From the NCBI GenBank assembly GCA_963924565.1, contig OZ004610.1:12028001-12092000 (forward strand): a stretch of 64,000 nucleotides of DNA, given 5' to 3'. The position numbers and the translations under genes are program-made. The notes beneath the pieces are model-generated. The model was not told the DNA's origin and ran no database searches. It worked only from the letters and a program-made list of their open reading frames with translations. The stretch is from Ascidiella aspersa. Its lineage: Eukaryota. Positions within the stretch are counted from its first letter, which is position 1. Every line of letters starts with the position of its first letter. Below, piece by piece: positions 41,115 to 53,917 of the stretch.

Positions 41115-42391
41115 GGGTGGTACTAAATACCGAATGGTACCGAATGGTACCGAATGGTACCGAATGGCACCGAATGGCACCGAATGGCACCGAATGGAAC
41201 CACATGGGATTGAATGCTAACGAATGCCAAACAAACTAAACGTCTGTTTTACTCCTAAATCTGATTTAATTTTACACTGAAGCATATCTTGTCGCGTGAG
41301 AGTATTTTAAAACGTATGAAGCCTAAGGAGGGTTGCAATGAACATGGTACCGAATGAAACCGAATGGCACCGTATTGAACCCAATAAAACCCATTGTAAC
41401 TCGTAATAGAAACACTAAATACCGAATGGCACCGAACGGAACCCAATAGAACCGAACGGAATCCAATAGAACCCATTATGTAGCTCGTAATAGAAACACT
41501 AAATACCGAATGGTACCGTATTGAACCCAATAGAACCCATTATAACTCGTAATAGAAACACTAAATACCAAATGGTACCGAATGGCACCGAACGGAACCC
41601 AATAGAACCGAACGGAACCCAACAGAACCCATTGTAACTTGTAATAGAAACACTAAATACCGAATGGTACCGAATGGCACCGAACGGAACCCAATAGAAC
41701 CCATTGTAACTTGTAATAGAAACACTAAATACCGAATGGTACCGAATGGCACCGAACGGCACCGAACGGAACCCAATAGAACCGAACGGAACCCAATATA
41801 ACCCATTGTAACTCGTAATAGAAACACTAAATACCGAATGGTATCGAATGGTACCGAATGGCACCGAACGGAACCTAATAGAACTGAACGGAACCCAATA
41901 GAACCTATTGTAACTCGTAATAGAAGTTCCGTTCGGTTCTATTGGGTTGCGTTCGGTGCCATTCGGTACCATTCGGTATTTAGTGTTTCTATTACGAGTT
42001 ACAATGGGTTCTATTGGGTTTAATACGGTACCATTCGGTTCCATTCGGTATTTTGTGTTTCTATTACGAGTTACAATGGGTTCTATTGGGTTTAATACGG
42101 TACCATTCGGTATTTAGTGTTTCTATTACGAGTTACAATGGGTTCTATTGGGTTCAATACGGTACCATTCGGTACCATTCGGTACCATTCGAAACCATTC
42201 GGTACCATTCGGAACCATTCGGTACCATTCGTTACCATTCGATACCAATCGGTATTTAGTGTTTCTATTACGAGTTACAATGGGTTCTATTGGGTTCAAT
42301 ACGGTACCATTCGGTATTGAGTGATTCTCCTATGAGTTGTATTGGGTTCCATTGGATTCCATTCGGTACCATTCGGTATTTAGTACCACCC
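41115..42391. mobile_element. Foldback-type (Mutator-like) element built of tandem repeats, 9-bp TSD
   Basis: Ends GGGTGGTACTAAATACCGAATGGTACCGAATGG / CCATTCGGTACCATTCGGTATTTAGTACCACCC. TSD cttcaattc at 41106-41114 and 42392-42400. Arrays of the 10-bp unit ACCGAATGGT/C and a longer composite unit flip orientation at about 41925. Confidence 0.9.
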
Positions 42392-42930: not shown

Positions 42931-45900
42931 ATGATGTTTAATCGCAGACACCGGGGTTGGATACAAACCAGTATTATACTGATACTTATCATATCCCTGG
43001 GTTATGGCTTTTACCTGTATAACATTTTACAAGTCAAAGTGAAGCATTTAGACACAAAAGCGGAGAGATATCAATCACAACACCGATCCCTATCATCACA
43101 GTTGCAAGGTCAGTGATAGGCTGCTAAATTATTGATTAAAAAAGTTTTAGTTAAGTTGTATAAATGTGTGTTTATCTGCTTTCAGTTGTATATGAAGATC
43201 GCTCACGACTTGAAAACTCTTTGCATAAGGAAAAGCAAGATCATGAAAATACAAAGCAAGGTTTGTACAGTTTATTATTTAAATGCAATTTTTTATTTAA
43301 TATCAAACCTAAATTATTGATGGTAAATTAGCGGATCAAGGATTCCTGTTTGAAGGGGAAAAGGCATAAATTTTTTAACTTTGTTAGGTCACTTCCTATA
43401 AAAAATTGAAACACCTGACAGTTGTTAAAAAAAATTGTGTGTATTTAGTTGAAATTAAAAAAAAACTCTAATTTAAGTGATGTGACACTAGGGTTCCTCT
43501 CGGGAATGTTTCGACGGGAAATTCCCGGGATTTCCCGCAAATTAACAATCCCGAATCCCGGGAAATTTTTTTTATAATCCCGGGTATTCGGCAACCTAGC
43601 AAAACTTTAAAAATATTGCCGTTTTTGACTAATATAAATAAAAAAATAGTACCAACCATGTTAACGTCGTTGCCTGAGTTGTTTTATTTGCGCTTACCAG
43701 CGGAAAAACCTAATTAAATTTATTCTAACAAAAAAAATACGTCATGCATGCGCATGCATGCACAAATAGCGGTCCTGACTCGCATTAGAGAAGGTCTGGC
43801 GCTCCTTCAGTTATGTTAGCGTTTGGGTAAGGGTGGGTCAAGGGTTATTATTAATAATAAACATAATAATACTTGACACACCCTCACCCAAACGCTAACC
43901 TGTGGTATGCGGTATTTCTTTCTTTTGTTTTTTTTTGCATAACTTTCCACGTACATAAGTGAAAGAACGCCCATAAATGAGCTTAATTAAATGTTTGGAG
44001 CTAAAATAAAAAAAATACAAACCTCAAAATGACATAATTTTATGTATAATTTTTTCGTCTGGATCCCGGGATTCCCGGGAAGTTTCATTTTTCAATCCCG
44101 TTTCCCGGGAGTGAAAAAATCCGGGAAAAAGAGGAACCCTATGTGACACCTTAGGCACATAAAAGAAAATTGCATATTGCTCAAAACAACAGAATTCATA
44201 GTCTAATTTAACAAAAAATTCGCTTTGAAGAGCTTAAGCCACACAGCTCAACCTCCCATAGTATGCATAGCGCATTTGTAGACCTGAATAAATTCCTTAA
44301 AACGGACAATACATAGTAAAAATGGAAATTTTTTACCTAAAATCGATTTGACATTACGCGTTTAATTTTTATATTCATCGTGAAAAGTGTTACTCATTTT
44401 GTAAATTATAGTTAGTCTGTAAAACACCTGCATTCAGGGGCATTATGGATTTGCCACACATACTATATACGATAGGGAGACATGGATTTTTTGTCCCCTC
44501 AAACTCTGAAATTTTAATCCTAAAAAATACACTTTTATTGGACTCTAGATATATGATTTTTTCTAAATTATTTGAATTATGACATATATGGCCAGCAAAA
44601 TCAGTTGCTGTTGCTGTGAAAAATTGTTTAATTCGGTGATAAACTTAGTTGTTCATATGGCGCAGTTTTCACGTTCCATATAAAAGAATATATACAACTT
44701 ACAAAAATTACAAAATAGAAAAAAAAATTAAATTTAGAAATGGATCGCTCTCAAGAGCAGCACCAACTAGCAATGGAAGAGCTCGAGAAAGAACACAAAT
44801 TAAAGTTGGATGAAATAAGTGAAAAGCATCAACAAGCAGAGGTTTCTTAACTGACAGTTTCACTATACAGTATATTGCTATTAACCTAGGAGACTGTATT
44901 TCGCTGTAAATATACATTTAGATATAAGAAAACATTTTTTTGTTTTTTCAAAAATATTACTATGTTGCTAAACATATTAAGAATAGAAAATTGCAGTCAT
45001 TCAATCAGTAATTTTTATTTTGAGGTACTTTAAGAATGAATGTTCTGTTTAGACAGGAATGTGCATATAAATATAATGTGCCCTGTCAATTTAAAATTAA
45101 TTTTGTTGCAGACTGATTTAGAAAATGCCCGAAAGCAAGTACTGAGTTACGTAGAAAAAGAAAATGTCATGAAAGAAAAACAAGACAAAGAAGGTGAAGA
45201 GGTACGCAACCAGAAGTCTGTACTGGAACAAAGCAATGCTGACTTACAAGGTATTTATTTATTTTAAAACAGTATTATCTGTGTGATTAAGTAATGTAGG
45301 TGCATTGCCACAACTGTGGTTATGCAAGTCCTTGATCCATTATATTGTTGAAACAATAAAGAATATTTTGTATGGATTAATTATGTACTAAAATTTGAAA
45401 CAAACCTACTATTTATTTAAATGGTAAGAATTGTAAATTATTCACTGAAGTCTAAGCAAGGTAATTTTTAGACAAAGTATGTTTAAAAATTTTTAAATTT
45501 CAATTAATTTTAGTTTGAGGATTTAAAACCCAAAAAATTACGAAGCTTAAAATTTAATGATTTATTACACAAAAATCTTAGTTGAACCATTCTAAGTCAA
45601 ATCATGTAAAATAACTTAAGTTCACTCAAGGTCTAAAAAAACATAGGTTTTGCACTTTAAGTCATACCTTCTGTAATTACGACACTGGTAAATATTATTC
45701 GTTCGTATTTCATTTACATACTATTGTCCTCTTGTTGTAAAATAATAAAATACATTGTTTATGGTGGAATTGACTGCAATTGTTGTCAATTAGGTGTAAA
45801 TATTTTCAATTTTGTGAGACCACTTATTGGCCATGAATCCATGATAATCGTTTTACTTACAGGTAACAGTCATAAAATTTATTGTTGATAAAAGTCCTGG

Positions 45901-48900
45901 TTTAAAATTATACACCTCCTGTAGTATTGGGATATGTTAATTTAAGTACCCATGTGCATTAATTTTTGCTTTGTTAGACAAACTTAACCAGCTGAAAAAC
46001 GCACATGACAGCTTGGTTATATCAAAAAGTGAGTTGCAGCGACAACTGGAGCAATCTCAGGTAATCAGTATATATAGACTTTTGTAGTAGCCATTTTAGT
46101 TGTAATCGACAATAAACATGTATGTGCTTTAGATTTTAATATTATATATATATACAAACAATTTCCATGAAATAATAAGACAATGTTCAGATTACTCAAG
46201 AATGTCAAGGTATTTTAGCAAGTTGTTTTCCTAGATTGGTTCTCAAAGCTATCTAAAGCTACGTGCCCTCCTGAGTAGCATTGGTTCCGATGTAGTTAAT
46301 CTTGGTCACCAAAAGCTGTCCTTGCTTGCACCTGAAGATCGCAAGTGGCTGTTTGGTGAGTTTTGAAGACTGTTTTAACCCTATTTTTTATGTTTTTAAG
46401 GTTTTATTTTTTACCTATTCTCGTTCTTATATATTATCTCTTTTTTTTTGCACTTATGAGTGCCTAATGTTTGCTAATTTAGTATGGAATGACGGATACA
46501 TTTAGTTGAATGTAAATCCTTTTTGTTTGTTTGACATGCATTAATTCAATTAAAAGGATTTTAACCTCAAAATTGTAAATATAGATTTATTTAGGCAACA
46601 ATTGGCCCTCTCCTCATGTGATTTCAATTTGTCTAGACTCTAGCCAAAAAATATCTGCCTAAAACATATATATTTTTGAAGAATTGGATTATAGAGTCTA
46701 TAGCAAAGTTTTTGTTTTAAGAACACTTTGGGGGTAGCCCAAGCAATGCTGGCCAAATGGAAAGTCTACATCAGCAAAGTTTAAAGGACAATGAAACACG
46801 AAGACTTGCCATTCAACAAAGAGATCAGGACAAATTGCAACGCGATCAAATGATTGCTGCGAGAAATGAGCGACAGCAGCACCCAGAGTCAATTACTGAT
46901 CCCAAAAGTATGAGTATGGTCAAATAATAGTACAATTTTACACACATGTCTATATTTTTATTGGGCATCAGATTTTGGCAAAAGGTTGTATTTAGAATTA
47001 ACTGTCCAATTTCGAGCCAAAATTGTATTGAAATGCAATCTACTGCTTAGTTTACTATGTGTCTCCACGTCGTCATTTAGTCTTAATAACTAACAACAGC
47101 TGAGAAAAAATGTTGTAAATTTCTTCCTCACGTATTTGATTTGTTCTAGAAATTTGCTTTCTGCCAAAAGCGTTTGGAACTTGCAGTGGCCAAGAGTCGC
47201 GGTATTACTATGAGCCCAGCTTAAGTTCATGTACCCACTTTGTTTACTCGGGATGCGGGGGAAACACAAACAACTTTGCAACACACGAAGAATGTGAAAA
47301 AGCGTGTCAAAGTAAGTATTACTGCTCATCTCTGTATTTTACAACACTAGATTTTGTCAATTGGCAGAAAATAATACAGTAATACTGACCATAATACATG
47401 CTGAAATATGTTTTTGTTCTTAAGATCTTGCCGGACAAGCCCAAGCTCCATTGGGCAACCAGCCAGGAATGCGAGATCAAATAATGGTTAACCAGGATGA
47501 GAACATAGCACATGTAGACAACAAACGTCCTGACGACAACTTGATTGGAGGCCAGAATCAAAATCAACCTGACAACAATGGTCAAATTCAAGGTGAAATT
47601 TAGTATTCTGTGATAACGCTTACAGTCTTTATCAGACCAAGTCAAAGCATAGTGTGCTTAAATGAAATTATACGCACCTGATCTTGTGGTATGCCTATCA
47701 GCTCATAACTATGCTCCAATACACCAACGTATGTCCAACATGCCCACATCGCTTTCGTGTACTTAAATAACTGTAAATATTTCTTCTTGCCTTAAAACAT
47801 TGATCGTTTGACTTAAAGACATAGCTGCAGCTGGCGAAAGAGAAGGTGAAGTTCACCAACCAGATGGTGGTGAAGACGAAGAGGAACCGCTTCCTCAAGA
47901 CCCAAATCATGGCGTCGTGCCAGACAACGACGTTCAAGGAAAACAAAATGTAAAAATGAGTTTACGCCTTTTTTAAGGGAAGACCGCTAAGACAAACTTG
48001 TGACATCAAAGCCATTGATATTAGTTAGGTCTTATTGTGTAGTATTAAAGTGTTAAACTGGCCACAATTACACAAGTAGTCTAAATTTGAACCTAAAGCA
48101 CACTCCATAAACAATATTTTGTTTTGAATGAAAAACAAAAAACAGTTGAGCTTAAATGACAAGTTAAATGGAAAAAAACGATTTATGTGATTTTGAACTG
48201 TGTTGATTTTGAAACGATGTGAAAACTTGATTTCTATTAATTGCGTAAGGCACAACTGAAGCAAAAAAAAACATTGTTTATTTAATTATTGTACAACTGT
48301 AACTAATTTATTCCTGTTAACGTTACTATTAAAAATAAAGATTTAAAAAAGTTAGTTGTGGCTCTATATTAAAGTGCAAAAAAGCTCGTTTTCTTACTTA
48401 TTTTATGTGTCAACTATGTAAGCTTCGAACTTTAACCAACAAGACTGTGCAGAAGAAATTGTGAGTTCTAACCCTTAAGAAGAAACCGCTTTATCATAAA
48501 GACATTGCACACGAATTATTTATGCTACTGACGTAACGCCATTGTTTTCCAACCTCCATTGTGCTTCAAACAGGATGAAGACCGCAGTTACCGAGACACG
48601 GAAGACGAACGCGAGATGGATGACGTGGCAAGACAGGAGGAGAGAGCAAAGCAGGAGGAGCAGCAGGCTCAGTTCGAGCTCGATCAACAGAAACAACGTG
48701 AAAAGGACGAGGTCAGATTATAGAGTTTTTAAAACGTATACCAGGTACTAATAATATCGGCCGAAGGGTCTTAAATAGTGTCAAGCGTTTTTTAATAATG
48801 AGGGATGTCTTATATAATTGGTGCTTTATTTCGATACCCGACCCGATATTTATACACTGTTTGAAATTTCGTCTTTCCGATGGTCAAATAGGCAAAATTA

Positions 48901-51900
48901 ATTAAATTAAACTTGCAAACGCACTTTTTGTTAAATATGTTAAGCGAAAAAATACTCCAACGCTTGGAAACTTGGTTAATTTATTGCTAATATGTTACTT
49001 TCTAAATAAAATACCTTTCAAAGTGAAAAAAACCTCGTTTAAATTCAAACCATTATTAAATCAGTGGCAATACCACTCTATCAGACGAGACCTATGCTAC
49101 CGCATCGAGTATGGCCTAGAACAGGGATGTCCAACCTGCGGCCCGCCTGATATCTACGTGCGGCCCACCACTTATTGTCACTTTCAGTAGGCTTTATTAA
49201 AAGCAATTGTTTGATTATCACAAAAACGTGTAAAACGCGCAGTATTTGATGTAGGCGTAATATTATGTTTTTTCTGAGACCATAATCGAGTCTAATGTCG
49301 CATTTCAACATCCATCGAACACTTTGTGCACCCATCATTGCTAAGAAGATGTGTGTTTTTGCAGACCGTTTTAAGGAAATATATCAGCCCAAACCTGTAA
49401 AAACTCAAAATTTCACGCTTCGCCATAATAAAAAAAAAATAAGGTCGAGATTACTTGCATATTTACGCACGACTTCACTCTCGAAGAACAGATGTTTATA
49501 AGTAGGCTAAAGTTGTTTTATGACGTCACCTCTTTAATTTGAGAGGTTTTTCGAAATTTTTAAAGTGGCAATGCGGCCCATTCTGCTAAAATGTTGGACA
49601 TCCCTGGCTTAGAACAATGATTCTCAAAGGTAGCCACTTGGCTCACTTTGGGGGGAATTTTAAATTTTGGGGAGGAAATGTGGATACAAATGGATCACTT
49701 TTTATTATTTGATAATTAAAACATAACTAACTGCACAAAGTTTAAATGGGAACGTCTACTTACTATAAGACTTAAAGTACCTTTATATGAAAACAATATG
49801 CTGCTTTAACTGTGTTAATCTACGTCATAATAGACTCTGTTTGGTTTACAATATCTATTGTTTCGTCACAGTAAGTAAAGTTCACTAGCACCAGTTGTCT
49901 GTTTTATATTGTTTGTTTGTTTTAGCATGATTGTAAAACTAATATGCCAATTTAGTCGTTGCAGAGCAAACAGTTCTTCCATTTCCGACTACACATTTAG
50001 TCGAATGTGGTTTTAGTGCCATTAGAGATATTTTTACGAAAAAAGGATCACTTTACATTTGCAAACGCTGTGATCTTGGGGCAAAACTGACATGCTTTTC
50101 TCCTTAATTTTCATTGTTTTTTGAAACATGTTCACATTAACAATGAATGACGCTTTGGAAATACGTATGAATATTTCGTTTGGTAAAATTGTTCTTTGCA
50201 TTTTTGTATTGTTTTTTAATTATACCTTAGTTTTGTAATGTTCACTGTTATCTCTGAGATAAATCATAAAAACGCACGTTGCACATCCTATCCATATGGG
50301 TACTGTGAAGTTTTGGCAATATTCCTTTTGGGATTTTTTTGGGAGGGATTAACATTGTTTGAGTCTTTAAGGGAGAAATACGAAAAAAACTTTGAGAACC
50401 ACTGTCCTAGAATATCGAATATCCCCCCTGAGATAACCATCACTGCTTATCCGGTTTAGCACTGATTATGCGACGCAATCAATACTAATCGACCACTCCA
50501 TCGAACCCAAGTCCCGTAAAACGACAAGGCACGTTCAAGTGTACTTTGTGCAACGGACAGACTTTGTATACGATGGCTCGTTGCGATTCAAGAAATCGTC
50601 GTGTCATTAAGATTCAAATGATTTTAAGTTGGTTATAAACGCAGCCTGCGCACACCGCAACGATATGATTATGCTTGGCGATCTGCGTAAACCAGAGTTG
50701 AGCGCTTCTTGTTTCAAGCGAAAATCGTGTTATTTACTTACGTACTTTGAACAGCTAAAATACACACAGACTCTTCTGTTGTGCAGTCGCAACACACGTC
50801 GAGCTTTGAACAAACCAACTGACATTTGTTGCTCATTACGCTGCTAAGGCGGCGATTTTGAGCTGATCGGAACTCGTGCTAATCGATAAGCTTGTCGGGA
50901 CTGGCGTGACGTTGTGTGTGCGCCCGTAGCACGTCCTGTCCTAATTGACGTTAAAACGCGTCACGGTCACGCCGGGCGCGTTTGAATTGAAAAATGTTGC
51001 GTAGAATTAGTGTGACTGAAATGCAAACCATGGTGTACTACAGGGGTTCCTAACCTTTCCCCCTTATTACCCGTTTCTGTCCAGATCAAAGTCCCATTAC
51101 CCAAACAAAACAATTCTAAAAATAATAAAATATCAATGTGCTTGATTGGTTGTTTTAAAATGACTCAAAACATAAAAAAAAACACCTGCTATCCCACAGG
51201 TTAAAAACCCCTGGTCTACTAGAACCACACTTAAATTGGCATGACTCTCTATTTTTAAAAGGAAATTCTGTTTAATACAGTTTTTGCAAGTCCTCAAGAT
51301 TAACAAAGAATAAAAAAATTAAATACATGTTGGATCTTACAATTATTGTTTGGTCCAATGTTTCCTCAAAAAGTGCAACTAACTCGCCTGTTCCCGAATA
51401 TTTTTTTATTTGAAGAAGAGGGTAAACTTAGGGCATAGTTTGAAATGGGGCTCAACTCTAATAAAACATACCAGCAATGACTTCCCGCTAAACAAACAGA
51501 ACGGCGAGGAAGGTCCCGGTCTCCAGGAAGAGCAACAAAAGCAGCTGAACGAAGAGAATGCGGGCAAGGATCCAATCGAGAAGCTACGTGAGTTGCAGGA
51601 ACAGCAGGTCGTCATGGTGGACGAGCAGGCCAAGGACATCGACCAGCTGGTCAAACACCAGCAGCAAGTCGAACACAAGGAAGAGAAGGCGCCCGCCGGC
51701 GAAGAGCACATGGGTCAGTCTAAATGCACTTTAATTCATTTTTTTCTGCCTTGTATTTTTTTTTTTTTGGTATTGACTGATGCACTTTGCATGCATTCTG
51801 TGGTACGGCAGGACCATCTGACATGATATTGCTAACTGAAAAACTTGTCACGGCAAATTATGCTAATTTGTCTGTTTTATCGTGCAACTTTAATAATAGT

Positions 51901-53917
51901 GTGTCGATGTGTTTAAAAACCAACCCTTGTGATCGAAATAAGCCTGTAATTCACGCTGTAAAGGTCAACATATAGTCAAAGAGTAAATGTGCACCGTCAC
52001 TAAAATAGTCTACCGGCCTATTAATCTTGAATGACTTCGTAAATAAAGACTTTTTAGATATATATATATATATATATTTTTAGGCGGTGGAATATTTTAT
52101 CTGCCTTCTTGTTTTCCAAGTTGTATTTTTTACCCCCTTTTATATCACCGTTTCTCATTTGAAACCTTTTGATTGTTTTTACAGAAGAGGGCCAACTCCG
52201 GGGACGCGTCTTCGAAGAAGAAGCTGCCAATCTTGCAAAGGACGAAGGTGAAGAGGACAAATACGATGATGTGCCAGTTGCTGGCGATGCGGGGAGAGTC
52301 GACGGTAATTTGGTTTGAACTTCTTTCCGACAAAGTTTCAGCTTGTTATTGACAAAGTTTTAGCTTGTTATTGACAAAGTTTTAGCTTGTTACCTACGTA
52401 AATATAATCAATCATCGGTTCGCTCTAAAGCCATATGTCCTACACGTTTAGATGAGCAACAGATCATATTGGAAATTCTAAATAGGTGTAGCGAACCTAC
52501 CGATGTGCATCCACGTTCTACGAAGCGTGCAGATCGCCTTTTTCCTATTTCGCAATTGTACATTTATAAACGCGTGTTTGAGCTTTTGCTACCCCTTTAC
52601 CTTTACCTTGACTTAACCATGTCGCAGCTACGCAATAAAGCACCAACCGCTTTATAGGGATGTTTATTATCGAATCAATGGCGATACCCAATGCATGTGG
52701 TAGTATAGGCAATCTTTTAAAGTATTTCAGGGACCACGGCGGCCTTTAAAATATAGTCGCATCTACAAATATGGTTATTTTTCGTGTCGATGTCGAGCCC
52801 AAAAAGGCTTATATGGATACAAAGTTTAACTATACGCTGTGGTAAATTTGAATGTTATAACTTTAAAAGTACCTTGTACAAATACGGTTACAGTCGGTTA
52901 TATTACCCACGATAAACCAACTTGGCGCAATTTAATATAGAATCTGCCAAGTGCCAAGCAAAAAATAATAACTAAAATTAAAAATAGGTAATCAAAAATA
53001 CTTGTGCCAAACACAATTGTGGGTAGCTAAAAATCTGCGCGACTTGCTTAAAATATAACTTTTTTCCATTGTAAAGTGTTATGAGTTTGACCTTTAGATG
53101 TAACATGTATTCAGCTTTTTACTCAGCTTCAATTAAGAGTTTGCTTTTGTCGCAGATCCTGATGCTCAGGTCGACGTACCCCCTGCTGGGGCTCATGAAG
53201 CGGGCGCCCCACACATGGTAATGAATGCCCCACTTATTAACGACGGTCAGAACAACCAAGGCGAGAACGAATATCAAGAGCCGGTACGTAGAAAAATAAG
53301 TTAAACAAGTTGGTGAAATTTTAAGTTGGTTCTTCTTCTTGATTGATGTTATCTCGTTTCTTTGGAATTTCTTTAAAGTTGAAATTCTATTGACGCTCAA
53401 GTTTAAGGTGATTTAAGAAATAAACAGGCCCCTCCTATGGCTAAAAATGTTTTACACTTGGTTAACACATTGTTACACCAAAAACTACTTCTGATATTTT
53501 TTTTCTGAATGCCACATAAATAAAACACAGCTCTGTTGCCAACATGATATTTATTTTCCTCGCGCGTAAACCCAAACGATGCCGAGCGTACCTGCTATAA
53601 TAACACAACACGCTTTGTTATCCTGCTTTCGATCGCAGAACTTTGACGGTGGAAATCGCGAAGCAGAGGGAGGCGCCGAGGAGGAGGAGGAAGAAGACGA
53701 AGAAGAAGAGGGAGGAGAAGAGGACAATTACGAGGACGAGGGAGACCCACACAACAACAAAAACGATGGTAATGATGCTGACAACAAGCTCCATCTTCCT
53801 CCAGGCGAAGCGGCGGAACAGGATGGCGGATACGCAGAGGAGCGCGGCGGACGCGAAGACGCGGACGACCAGCGCCACCAGGAGGCGCTCGCGGTCGCTA
53901 TGCGTCGCGAGATGTGA
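42931..53917 (+). CDS. GOLIM4: Golgi integral membrane protein 4 (GPP130) ortholog, type II membrane; about 741 aa with the Kunitz exon, about 687 aa without
   Basis: Exons 42931-43108, 43186-43260, 44738-44841, 45112-45250, 45978-46060, 46235-46355, 46722-46907, 47150-47311, 47425-47592, 47819-47949, 48574-48711, 51500-51713, 52185-52304, 53156-53283, 53639-53917 (2226 nt, phase-consistent). Short basic tail plus TM helix, then YQSQHRSLSSQLQVVYEDRSRLENSLHKEK (compare recalled human YQQHQESLSAQLQVVYEHRSRLEKSLQKER), coiled coil, acidic luminal region and C-terminal RREM (human RRAEM). Confidence 0.9.
43489..44141. mobile_element. hAT-type MITE with CCCGGGA subterminal repeats and 8-bp TSD
   Basis: TIR TAGGGTTCCTC / GAGGAACCCTA; perfect TSD tgtgacac. 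Confidence 0.9.
47150..47311 (+). CDS. Kunitz/BPTI domain exon within GOLIM4 (phase 1-1, 162 nt)
   Basis: ttgttctag|...|gtaagt. Translates (K)ICFLPKAFGTCSGQESRYYYEPSLSSCTHFVYSGCGGNTNNFATHEECEKACQ: six Cys in Kunitz spacing and the signature FxYxGCxGNxNNF. Confidence 0.92.
49122..49606. mobile_element. hAT-type MITE
   Basis: TIR CAGGGATGTCCAAC / GTTGGACATCCCTG; TSD gcctagaa/gcttagaa; homologous to 37568-38419. Confidence 0.85.
49615..50404 (+). mobile_element. Internally deleted Buster/Charlie-type hAT element with transposase C-terminal remnant
   Basis: Ends CAATGATTCTCAAAG / TTTGAGAACCACTG. 49961-50104 encodes AEQTVLPFPTTHLVECGFSAIRDIFTKKGSLYICKRCDLGAKLTCFSP, matching the Buster dimerisation motif PFPTTYLxExGFS...DLR..L...P. 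Confidence 0.85.
51041..51213. mobile_element. Short hAT-type MITE
   Basis: CAGGGGTTCCTAACC / GGTTAAAAACCCCTG; TSD gtgtacta/gtctacta. Confidence 0.8.
52329..52392. repeat. Tandem repeat, about 3 copies of a 21-22-bp unit
   Basis: gacaaagttt(c/t)agcttgttatt repeated about three times. Confidence 0.85.

Follow-up and report, generated by a model that had tools for sequence, protein, structure and literature searches.

We think it likely that the single GOLIM4/GPP130-family gene of the ascidian Ascidiella aspersa gained, within the tunicates, a phase 1-1 exon encoding a Kunitz domain, that this exon is spliced into the message, and that the domain either binds other proteins in the lumen or is an inhibitor whose specificity is not trypsin-like. 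The gene lies in the window analyzed here, a 64,000-nt stretch (C4:12,028,001-12,092,000) of a genome of 308.6 Mb in 75 contigs, in which exon 1 is single-copy; positions below are those of the window. The exon structure, its expression, the reading frame, the identity of the domain and its orthologous position are established in this work. In the mechanism that we propose, tunicate GOLIM4 would have acquired one such exon in an old event, and the type II topology would place the encoded module in the lumen of the Golgi and endosomes, between a conserved stem and an acidic tail, so that its three disulfides could form. There it may bind other proteins or inhibit proteases unlike trypsin, or it might, once convertases have cut the protein, act as part of a released fragment.

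The gene is assigned to the GOLIM4/GPP130 family because exon 1 matches GOLIM4 and GOLIM4-like proteins and because the Styela orthologue matches vertebrate GOLIM4. Exon 1 encodes ~10 polar residues followed by a hydrophobic stretch of ~20 residues, a predicted type II anchor with a short N-terminal tail, one transmembrane helix and the rest of the chain in the lumen. Together, exons 1-9 form 405 open codons from the start codon at 42931, and they order the chain as a short tail with a hydrophobic anchor, then a polar, helical stem of some length, then the Kunitz domain and polar/acidic sequence; the coiled-coil-like stem and a conserved post-stem segment are encoded by exons 3-6 (44738-46355, + strand). 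The spliced model was joined only for counting phases and stops, and homology searches were run exon by exon. The donor of exon 9 at 47592 is predicted from its GT and the frame. Exons 10-15 are tentative, placed by splice rules and homology, and the C-terminal motifs that they encode are shared with the orthologues; no RNA joints were found for them, 47819-48711 lying within the region sampled for RNA. With these exons included, the full predicted chain to the stop at 53917 would comprise ~732 residues, with a predicted luminal tail of 384 residues (29% D/E). A preliminary description of this DNA had placed the Kunitz domain between the coiled-coil stem and the acidic region of a type II GOLIM4-like protein, a placement that the frame and the homologues support.

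Table 1. Exons of the A. aspersa GOLIM4 gene and RNA joints within it, in window coordinates.
Feature	Position	Strand	Content	Evidence
Exon 1	42931-43108	+	start codon, short cytoplasmic tail, TM helix, stem start	sequence, phmmer matches
Exon 2	43186-43260	+	conserved V-Y-E-D-R-S-R-L-E motif	sequence, loose RNA ends at 44736
Exon 3	44738-44841	+		splice sites, phases
Exon 4	45112-45250	+		RNA joint 45248>45976, splice sites, phases
Exon 5	45978-46060	+		RNA joints 45248>45976 and 46058>46233, splice sites, phases
Exon 6	46235-46355	+	conserved in orthologues	RNA joints 46058>46233 and 46354>46721, splice sites, phases
Exon 7	46722-46907	+	186 nt, phase 1-1, Q/R-rich linker	RNA joints, per-exon BLASTP
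Exon 8	47150-47311	+	162 nt, phase 1-1, Kunitz/BPTI domain, ~residues 297-349 of the model	RNA joints, PF00014
Exon 9	47425-47592	+	168 nt, phase 1-1, start of poorly conserved polar/acidic luminal region	RNA joint 47311>47425, read depth, frame
Tentative exon 10	47819-47949	+		splice sites, frame
Tentative exon 11	48574-48711	+		splice sites, frame
Tentative exon 12	51527-51713	+		splice sites, frame; tblastn of P0002 residues 533-579 to 51536-51679
Tentative exon 13	52185-52304	+		splice sites, frame
Tentative exon 14	53156-53283	+		splice sites, frame
Tentative exon 15	53639-53917	+	includes stop; tail ends ...RREM	splice sites, frame
RNA joint	45248>45976	+	GT..AG	7 reads
RNA joint	46058>46233	+	GT..AG	5 reads
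RNA joint	46354>46721 (cut +1)	+	GT..AG	7 reads
RNA joint	46907>47150	+	GT..AG	10 reads, 9 start points
RNA joint	47311>47425	+	GT..AG	10 reads

Exon 8 follows a polypyrimidine tract and AG (...ttgttctAG), ends at a GTaagt donor, and is read from 47152 (47152-47310) as 53 codons without a stop. Its product has six cysteines spaced C-x8-C-x15-C-x7-C-x12-C-x3-C, all of which are invariant in an alignment with 10 other Kunitz domains, and it matches the Pfam profile PF00014 over positions 1-53 of 53 (70.1 bits, E 1.8e-19; cut-off 21 bits). When the sequences of solved structures were searched with exon 8, the best matches were all Kunitz proteins, with SmCI at the top (6.9e-31), followed by boophilin. 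AlphaFold2, run on a small alignment, gave a model with a mean pLDDT of 76.5, strands at 14-21 and 26-33, and a helix at 45-52. All top Foldseek matches to this model were Kunitz domains at TM ~0.7, the nearest being those of collagen VI alpha-3, textilinin, APP and HAI-1; the leading entries, 1knt/2knt, reached TM 0.73 and are 50% identical to the exon 8 domain. Exon 8 thus encodes a complete six-cysteine Kunitz domain, modeled with the expected hairpin and C-terminal helix. The preliminary description, which had seen an intact 162-nt exon with canonical splice sites and a full Kunitz domain and had proposed a PF00014 scan, is borne out by the AG and GT borders, the six cysteines and the end-to-end profile match. 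The exon is missing from the list of open reading frames only because it lacks a start codon; a + strand open frame at 47140-47379 spans it.

Splicing of the Kunitz exon into GOLIM4 mRNA was confirmed with one stranded RNA-seq data set from the same species (X4), which was sampled at ~6% and aligned to 44650-48800 under a 95% likeness filter; joints were listed from 3 reads upward, a threshold at which up to 2 skip reads would go unlisted. The first mate lies on the minus strand in all 82 reads, which fits + strand RNA in a standard stranded library. Both inclusion junctions that the preliminary description had named, from exon 7 into the Kunitz exon and from there into exon 9, were recovered (Table 1), and with the frame intact across them the exon does lie, as claimed, in frame between two phase-1 GOLIM4 exons. 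Loose read ends at 47150 spell the end of exon 7, and those at 44736 (9 reads) spell the end of exon 2. The individual sequenced for RNA differs from the reference at 47479, 47483, 47501, 47534 and 47567 in exon 9, four of the five being third codon positions. Read depth was 16.8 over the Kunitz exon versus 8.5 and 10.8 over its neighbors, the latter value belonging to exon 9. Past 47592 it falls from ~11 to ~2 and then to 0.3 over predicted exons 10 and 11, which could be due to allelic divergence beyond the 95% filter or to an alternative 3' end; the predicted link from the Kunitz domain to the acidic tail in A. aspersa is taken from orthologous proteins and the frame, not from reads.

Canonical splice sites flank the exon, which sits in a 517-nt gap between GOLIM4 exons, and the Ciona proteins and P0001, a relative described below, manage without a Kunitz domain. 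These features would suit a separate nested transcript, or a chance or neutral exonization without function. However, the reads join the exon to GOLIM4 exons on both sides and on the gene's strand, the reading frame is kept, and the position and scaffold of the domain are conserved over three ascidian orders. Moreover, among the sequence differences listed for X1, X2 and X4, none falls in the Kunitz exon, whereas several fall in exon 9 and in the introns on either side of the Kunitz exon. We find an origin of this kind scarcely credible; the nested-gene and chance-ORF readings in particular are ruled out by the RNA joints.

The distribution of the domain was surveyed with a phmmer search of exon 1 against 1.84 billion representative proteins, which returned 33 relatives, and with a search using residues 1-400 of the Styela orthologue. 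GOLIM4-like proteins matched exon 1 at 59-76% identity. They include P0001 (623 aa, 76%), the 'GOLIM4-like' P0002 of Phallusia mammillata (CAB3250249.1; 722 aa, 71%), P0003 of Styela clava (LOC120327588; 750 aa, 66%), the 'GOLIM4-like' P0004 of Ciona intestinalis (638 aa, 62%) and P0008 of Clavelina lepadiformis (LOC143448870, XP_076804904.1; 661 aa, 59%), the last of which is named 'BPTI/Kunitz inhibitor domain-containing protein' in UniProt. More distant matches to exon 1 came from amphioxus, a lizard GOLIM4-like protein and Nematostella GOLIM4, and the best matches of the Styela query outside Styela were vertebrate GOLIM4 proteins (E 2e-11). Kunitz domains occupy residues 311-361 of P0002, 326-377 of P0003 and 303-353 of P0008; none was found in P0001, in five Ciona sequences, in seven amphioxus isoforms, or in the lizard, Nematostella and vertebrate GOLIM4 matches. 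The vertebrate proteins retrieved are in agreement with the earlier statement that vertebrate GOLIM4 is not known to have such a domain, and the amphioxus and cnidarian proteins lack it too.

In P0002, P0008 and P0003 the Kunitz domain stands directly after the homologue of exon 7, as judged by per-exon BLASTP and alignment; exon 7 itself is homologous to residues 248-302 of both P0002 and P0008. By per-exon BLASTP, exon 8 is 42-59% identical to the three Kunitz-bearing orthologues, a higher conservation than that of exons 3-7; exon 9 could not be aligned with them. The Phallusia protein (P0002), the Clavelina protein (P0008) and Styela isoforms X1 and X3 (P0060, P0003) have in common with the A. 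aspersa protein the type II anchor, the stem motifs, the Kunitz position, a non-basic P1 residue and the acidic tail that is predicted for A. aspersa; their Kunitz domains are 42-57% identical to that of A. aspersa. Bearers of the domain span Phlebobranchia, Aplousobranchia and Stolidobranchia. Its presence is patchy, with P0001, the closest relative by exon 1, and Ciona both lacking it. Because the domain holds the same position in Phallusia, Clavelina and Styela and was not found in the proteins retrieved from Ciona, amphioxus, vertebrates and Nematostella, its gain in GOLIM4 is an old tunicate one, already visible in automatic annotation. Nor is the exon a recent copy, since the closest paralogous Kunitz exon in the genome is only 46% identical. 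The simplest reading of these sequences would be that the domain was gained once, ahead of the ascidian radiation, and that in Ciona it was later lost or has gone unannotated. The architecture had been presented as hidden, and here the preliminary description does not hold: the public records of three other ascidians already contain it, an outcome that its author had named as lowering the novelty.

Ascidian lineages might instead have gained Kunitz exons independently at the same GOLIM4 intron, with no ancestral gain and no loss in Ciona. The Styela domain is 42% identical to that of A. aspersa, and paralogous Kunitz exons of the genome are 41-46% identical, which would fit such a history, as would the weak support (40/23) with which the four GOLIM4 domains group in a Kunitz-only tree. 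Yet the best tree needs only one change, the domain directly follows the exon-7 homologue in all four ascidians, and the unusual loss of a basic P1 is common to all four domains. We regard repeated gain as highly improbable, and a single ancestral gain as the better account.

Other searches added little to this distribution. A search with residues 1-100 of P0002 returned only P0002 itself, and the candidates from a profile search (A1) were swamped by low-complexity sequences. A metagenome scan yielded only two contigs, both of which encode P0001, with no Kunitz sequence on either. On these JGI metagenome contigs of 9.2-9.6 kb (L013:5788-7656 and L014:4949-6817), P0001 is intronless and the flanks hold no other long ORF; P0001 could be a retrogene or could come from an intron-poor tunicate. 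A literature search found no paper that links GOLIM4/GPP130 with Kunitz domains or that deals with tunicate GOLIM4 proteins, returning incidental co-occurrences only.

P1 of BPTI-type inhibitors is the residue that follows the second cysteine. Among the four ascidian GOLIM4 domains, 18 of 53 positions are invariant, namely the six cysteines, the G-C-G-G-N-x-N-N-F core and other scaffold residues, whereas P1-P1' differs in each, being S-G in A. aspersa and E-N, T-D and H-D in the others. By comparison, eight other Kunitz exons in the genome have K or R at P1 and A or G at P1'. A trypsin-type site combines a basic P1 with a small P1'; the A. aspersa domain has a small P1' (Gly) but Ser at P1. 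The scaffold thus appears to be under constraint and the canonical trypsin-type reactive site does not. Because the scaffold is conserved while P1-P1' is non-basic and different in each orthologue, a conserved role as a trypsin-type inhibitor is unlikely, and we infer either a module that binds partners in the lumen or an inhibitor whose specificity is different and varies by lineage. BPTI variants with Ser, Thr, His or Glu at P1 can still weakly bind some proteases, and PDB entries among the structural matches include complexes of BPTI P1 variants with proteases. The proposal that the domain controls proteases of the secretory pathway, made in the preliminary description, is doubtful given reactive-site residues that are non-basic and differ in every orthologue. 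The canonical Kunitz exons with K or R at P1 lie in clusters (G000:C1:9333475-9337659, G000:C2:24017841-24022954 and G000:C1:14185199-14185817; L002-L011), one of which consists of four nearly identical exons ~1.6 kb apart; these clusters are probably multi-Kunitz inhibitor genes.

The same residues bear on whether the exon is a switchable cassette, whose inclusion or skipping would toggle a membrane-tethered serine-protease inhibitor in the secretory pathway in the manner of the APP KPI or HAI-2. The exon is symmetric, in phase 1 on both sides, and its removal keeps the frame; the Kunitz fold and all its scaffold residues are intact; and RefSeq isoform X4 of Styela clava (P0061) differs from isoform X1 (P0060) in lacking exactly the 56 residues of the Kunitz cassette. 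Nevertheless, isoform X4 is a computed model, and Styela is the only one of the Kunitz-bearing tunicates with an annotated skip isoform. In A. aspersa, inclusion is apparently constitutive in the sampled RNA: a skip joint 46907>47425 was absent at 3 or more reads in ~6% of the one RNA-seq data set, against 10 inclusion reads on each side. The P1-P1' pairs of the ascidian domains also stand against the K/R and A/G of the genome's other Kunitz domains. We consider a protease-inhibitor switch quite unlikely. Skipping as such is plausible in Styela, where the frame would be kept, with regulation not implied by the predicted isoform, and sampling at ~6% could have overlooked a skip isoform that is minor or confined to some tissues. 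The idea of switchable inclusion, which also came from the preliminary description, meets only inclusion joints in the sampled RNA, and its sole sign of skipping is that predicted Styela isoform. For A. aspersa we retain a spliced-in luminal module as the preferred reading.

APP and APLP2 also carry one Kunitz domain, KPI, in their luminal/extracellular part, encoded by a single symmetric phase-1 exon that is a cassette in APP. APP is a type I protein, however, and its KPI, with Arg at P1, is a potent inhibitor, whereas the A. aspersa GOLIM4 is predicted to be type II, has Ser at P1 and showed no skipping in the sampled RNA. HAI-1 and HAI-2 (SPINT1/2), whose structures 4isn and 4u32 were among the matches, are membrane-anchored Kunitz inhibitors that act in the secretory pathway. 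As membrane-tethered proteins with lumen-facing Kunitz domains they offer a possible working analogy, although they are type I, have two Kunitz domains with basic P1 residues, and lack the GOLIM4 stem. The C5 domain of collagen VI alpha-3 (1knt/2knt) is a Kunitz scaffold, not known to inhibit trypsin, inside a large non-inhibitor protein, differing in its extracellular matrix context. Vertebrate GOLIM4/GPP130 resembles the ascidian protein in its type II topology, the S-x-Q-L-Q-V-V-Y-E-x-R-S-R-L-E start of the stem, and, as far as the predicted tail goes, the acidic C-terminal region and the ...R-x-E-M end (PMC12250082), but no Kunitz domain was present in any vertebrate protein retrieved.

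Luminal shedding of human GPP130 is carried out by PC7 and furin, which cut at H-R-S-R70 and K-P-T-R277, within site S1 (PC7/furin; H-R-S-R-L-E-K) and site S2 (furin; K-P-T-R), respectively (PMC12250082). The D-R-S-R-L-E encoded in exon 2 (43197-43214) is equivalent to the S1 region and resembles that site (PMC12250082). A second motif, K-L-Q-R-D (46832-46846; conserved as K-x-x-R-D), resembles S2; it precedes the Kunitz domain by ~22 residues, and all six tunicate-type relatives in the alignment share its Arg. If both putative sites were used, the Kunitz domain would, speculatively, travel on the shed luminal fragment.

To our knowledge, little is understood of what GOLIM4/GPP130 does endogenously in the lumen; the protein is known mainly as a trafficking receptor for Shiga toxin and as a manganese-sensitive cycling protein. 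More recently it has become known as a convertase substrate (PMC12250082). A folded luminal module that is conserved across three ascidian orders would be a natural handle on the luminal contacts of GOLIM4 in the Golgi and endosomes, and the exon provides a clean, RNA-verified case in which a phase-1 Kunitz exon was shuffled into a type II Golgi protein. In practice the finding carries modest weight, since public tunicate annotations already show the architecture and any activity of the domain is putative. A bolder and tentative proposal, which we think possible but would not expect, is that tunicates made their sole GOLIM4 a luminal receptor or inhibitor by means of a retargeted Kunitz loop, which would capture a specific protease or cargo of the secretory pathway as GOLIM4 cycles between Golgi and endosomes, or would be shed, and whose presence cassette splicing would regulate in at least some species. 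If true, GOLIM4 would have a defined luminal ligand-binding function that is genetically dissectable in ascidian embryos.

A satellite array (41128-42384) lies ~550 bp upstream of the GOLIM4 start codon. A 10-bp subrepeat, ACCGAATGGA, underlies its units, which measure 62-102 bp, and the array yields many spurious ORFs on both strands. The array consists of two halves in opposite orientation, which meet near 41930.
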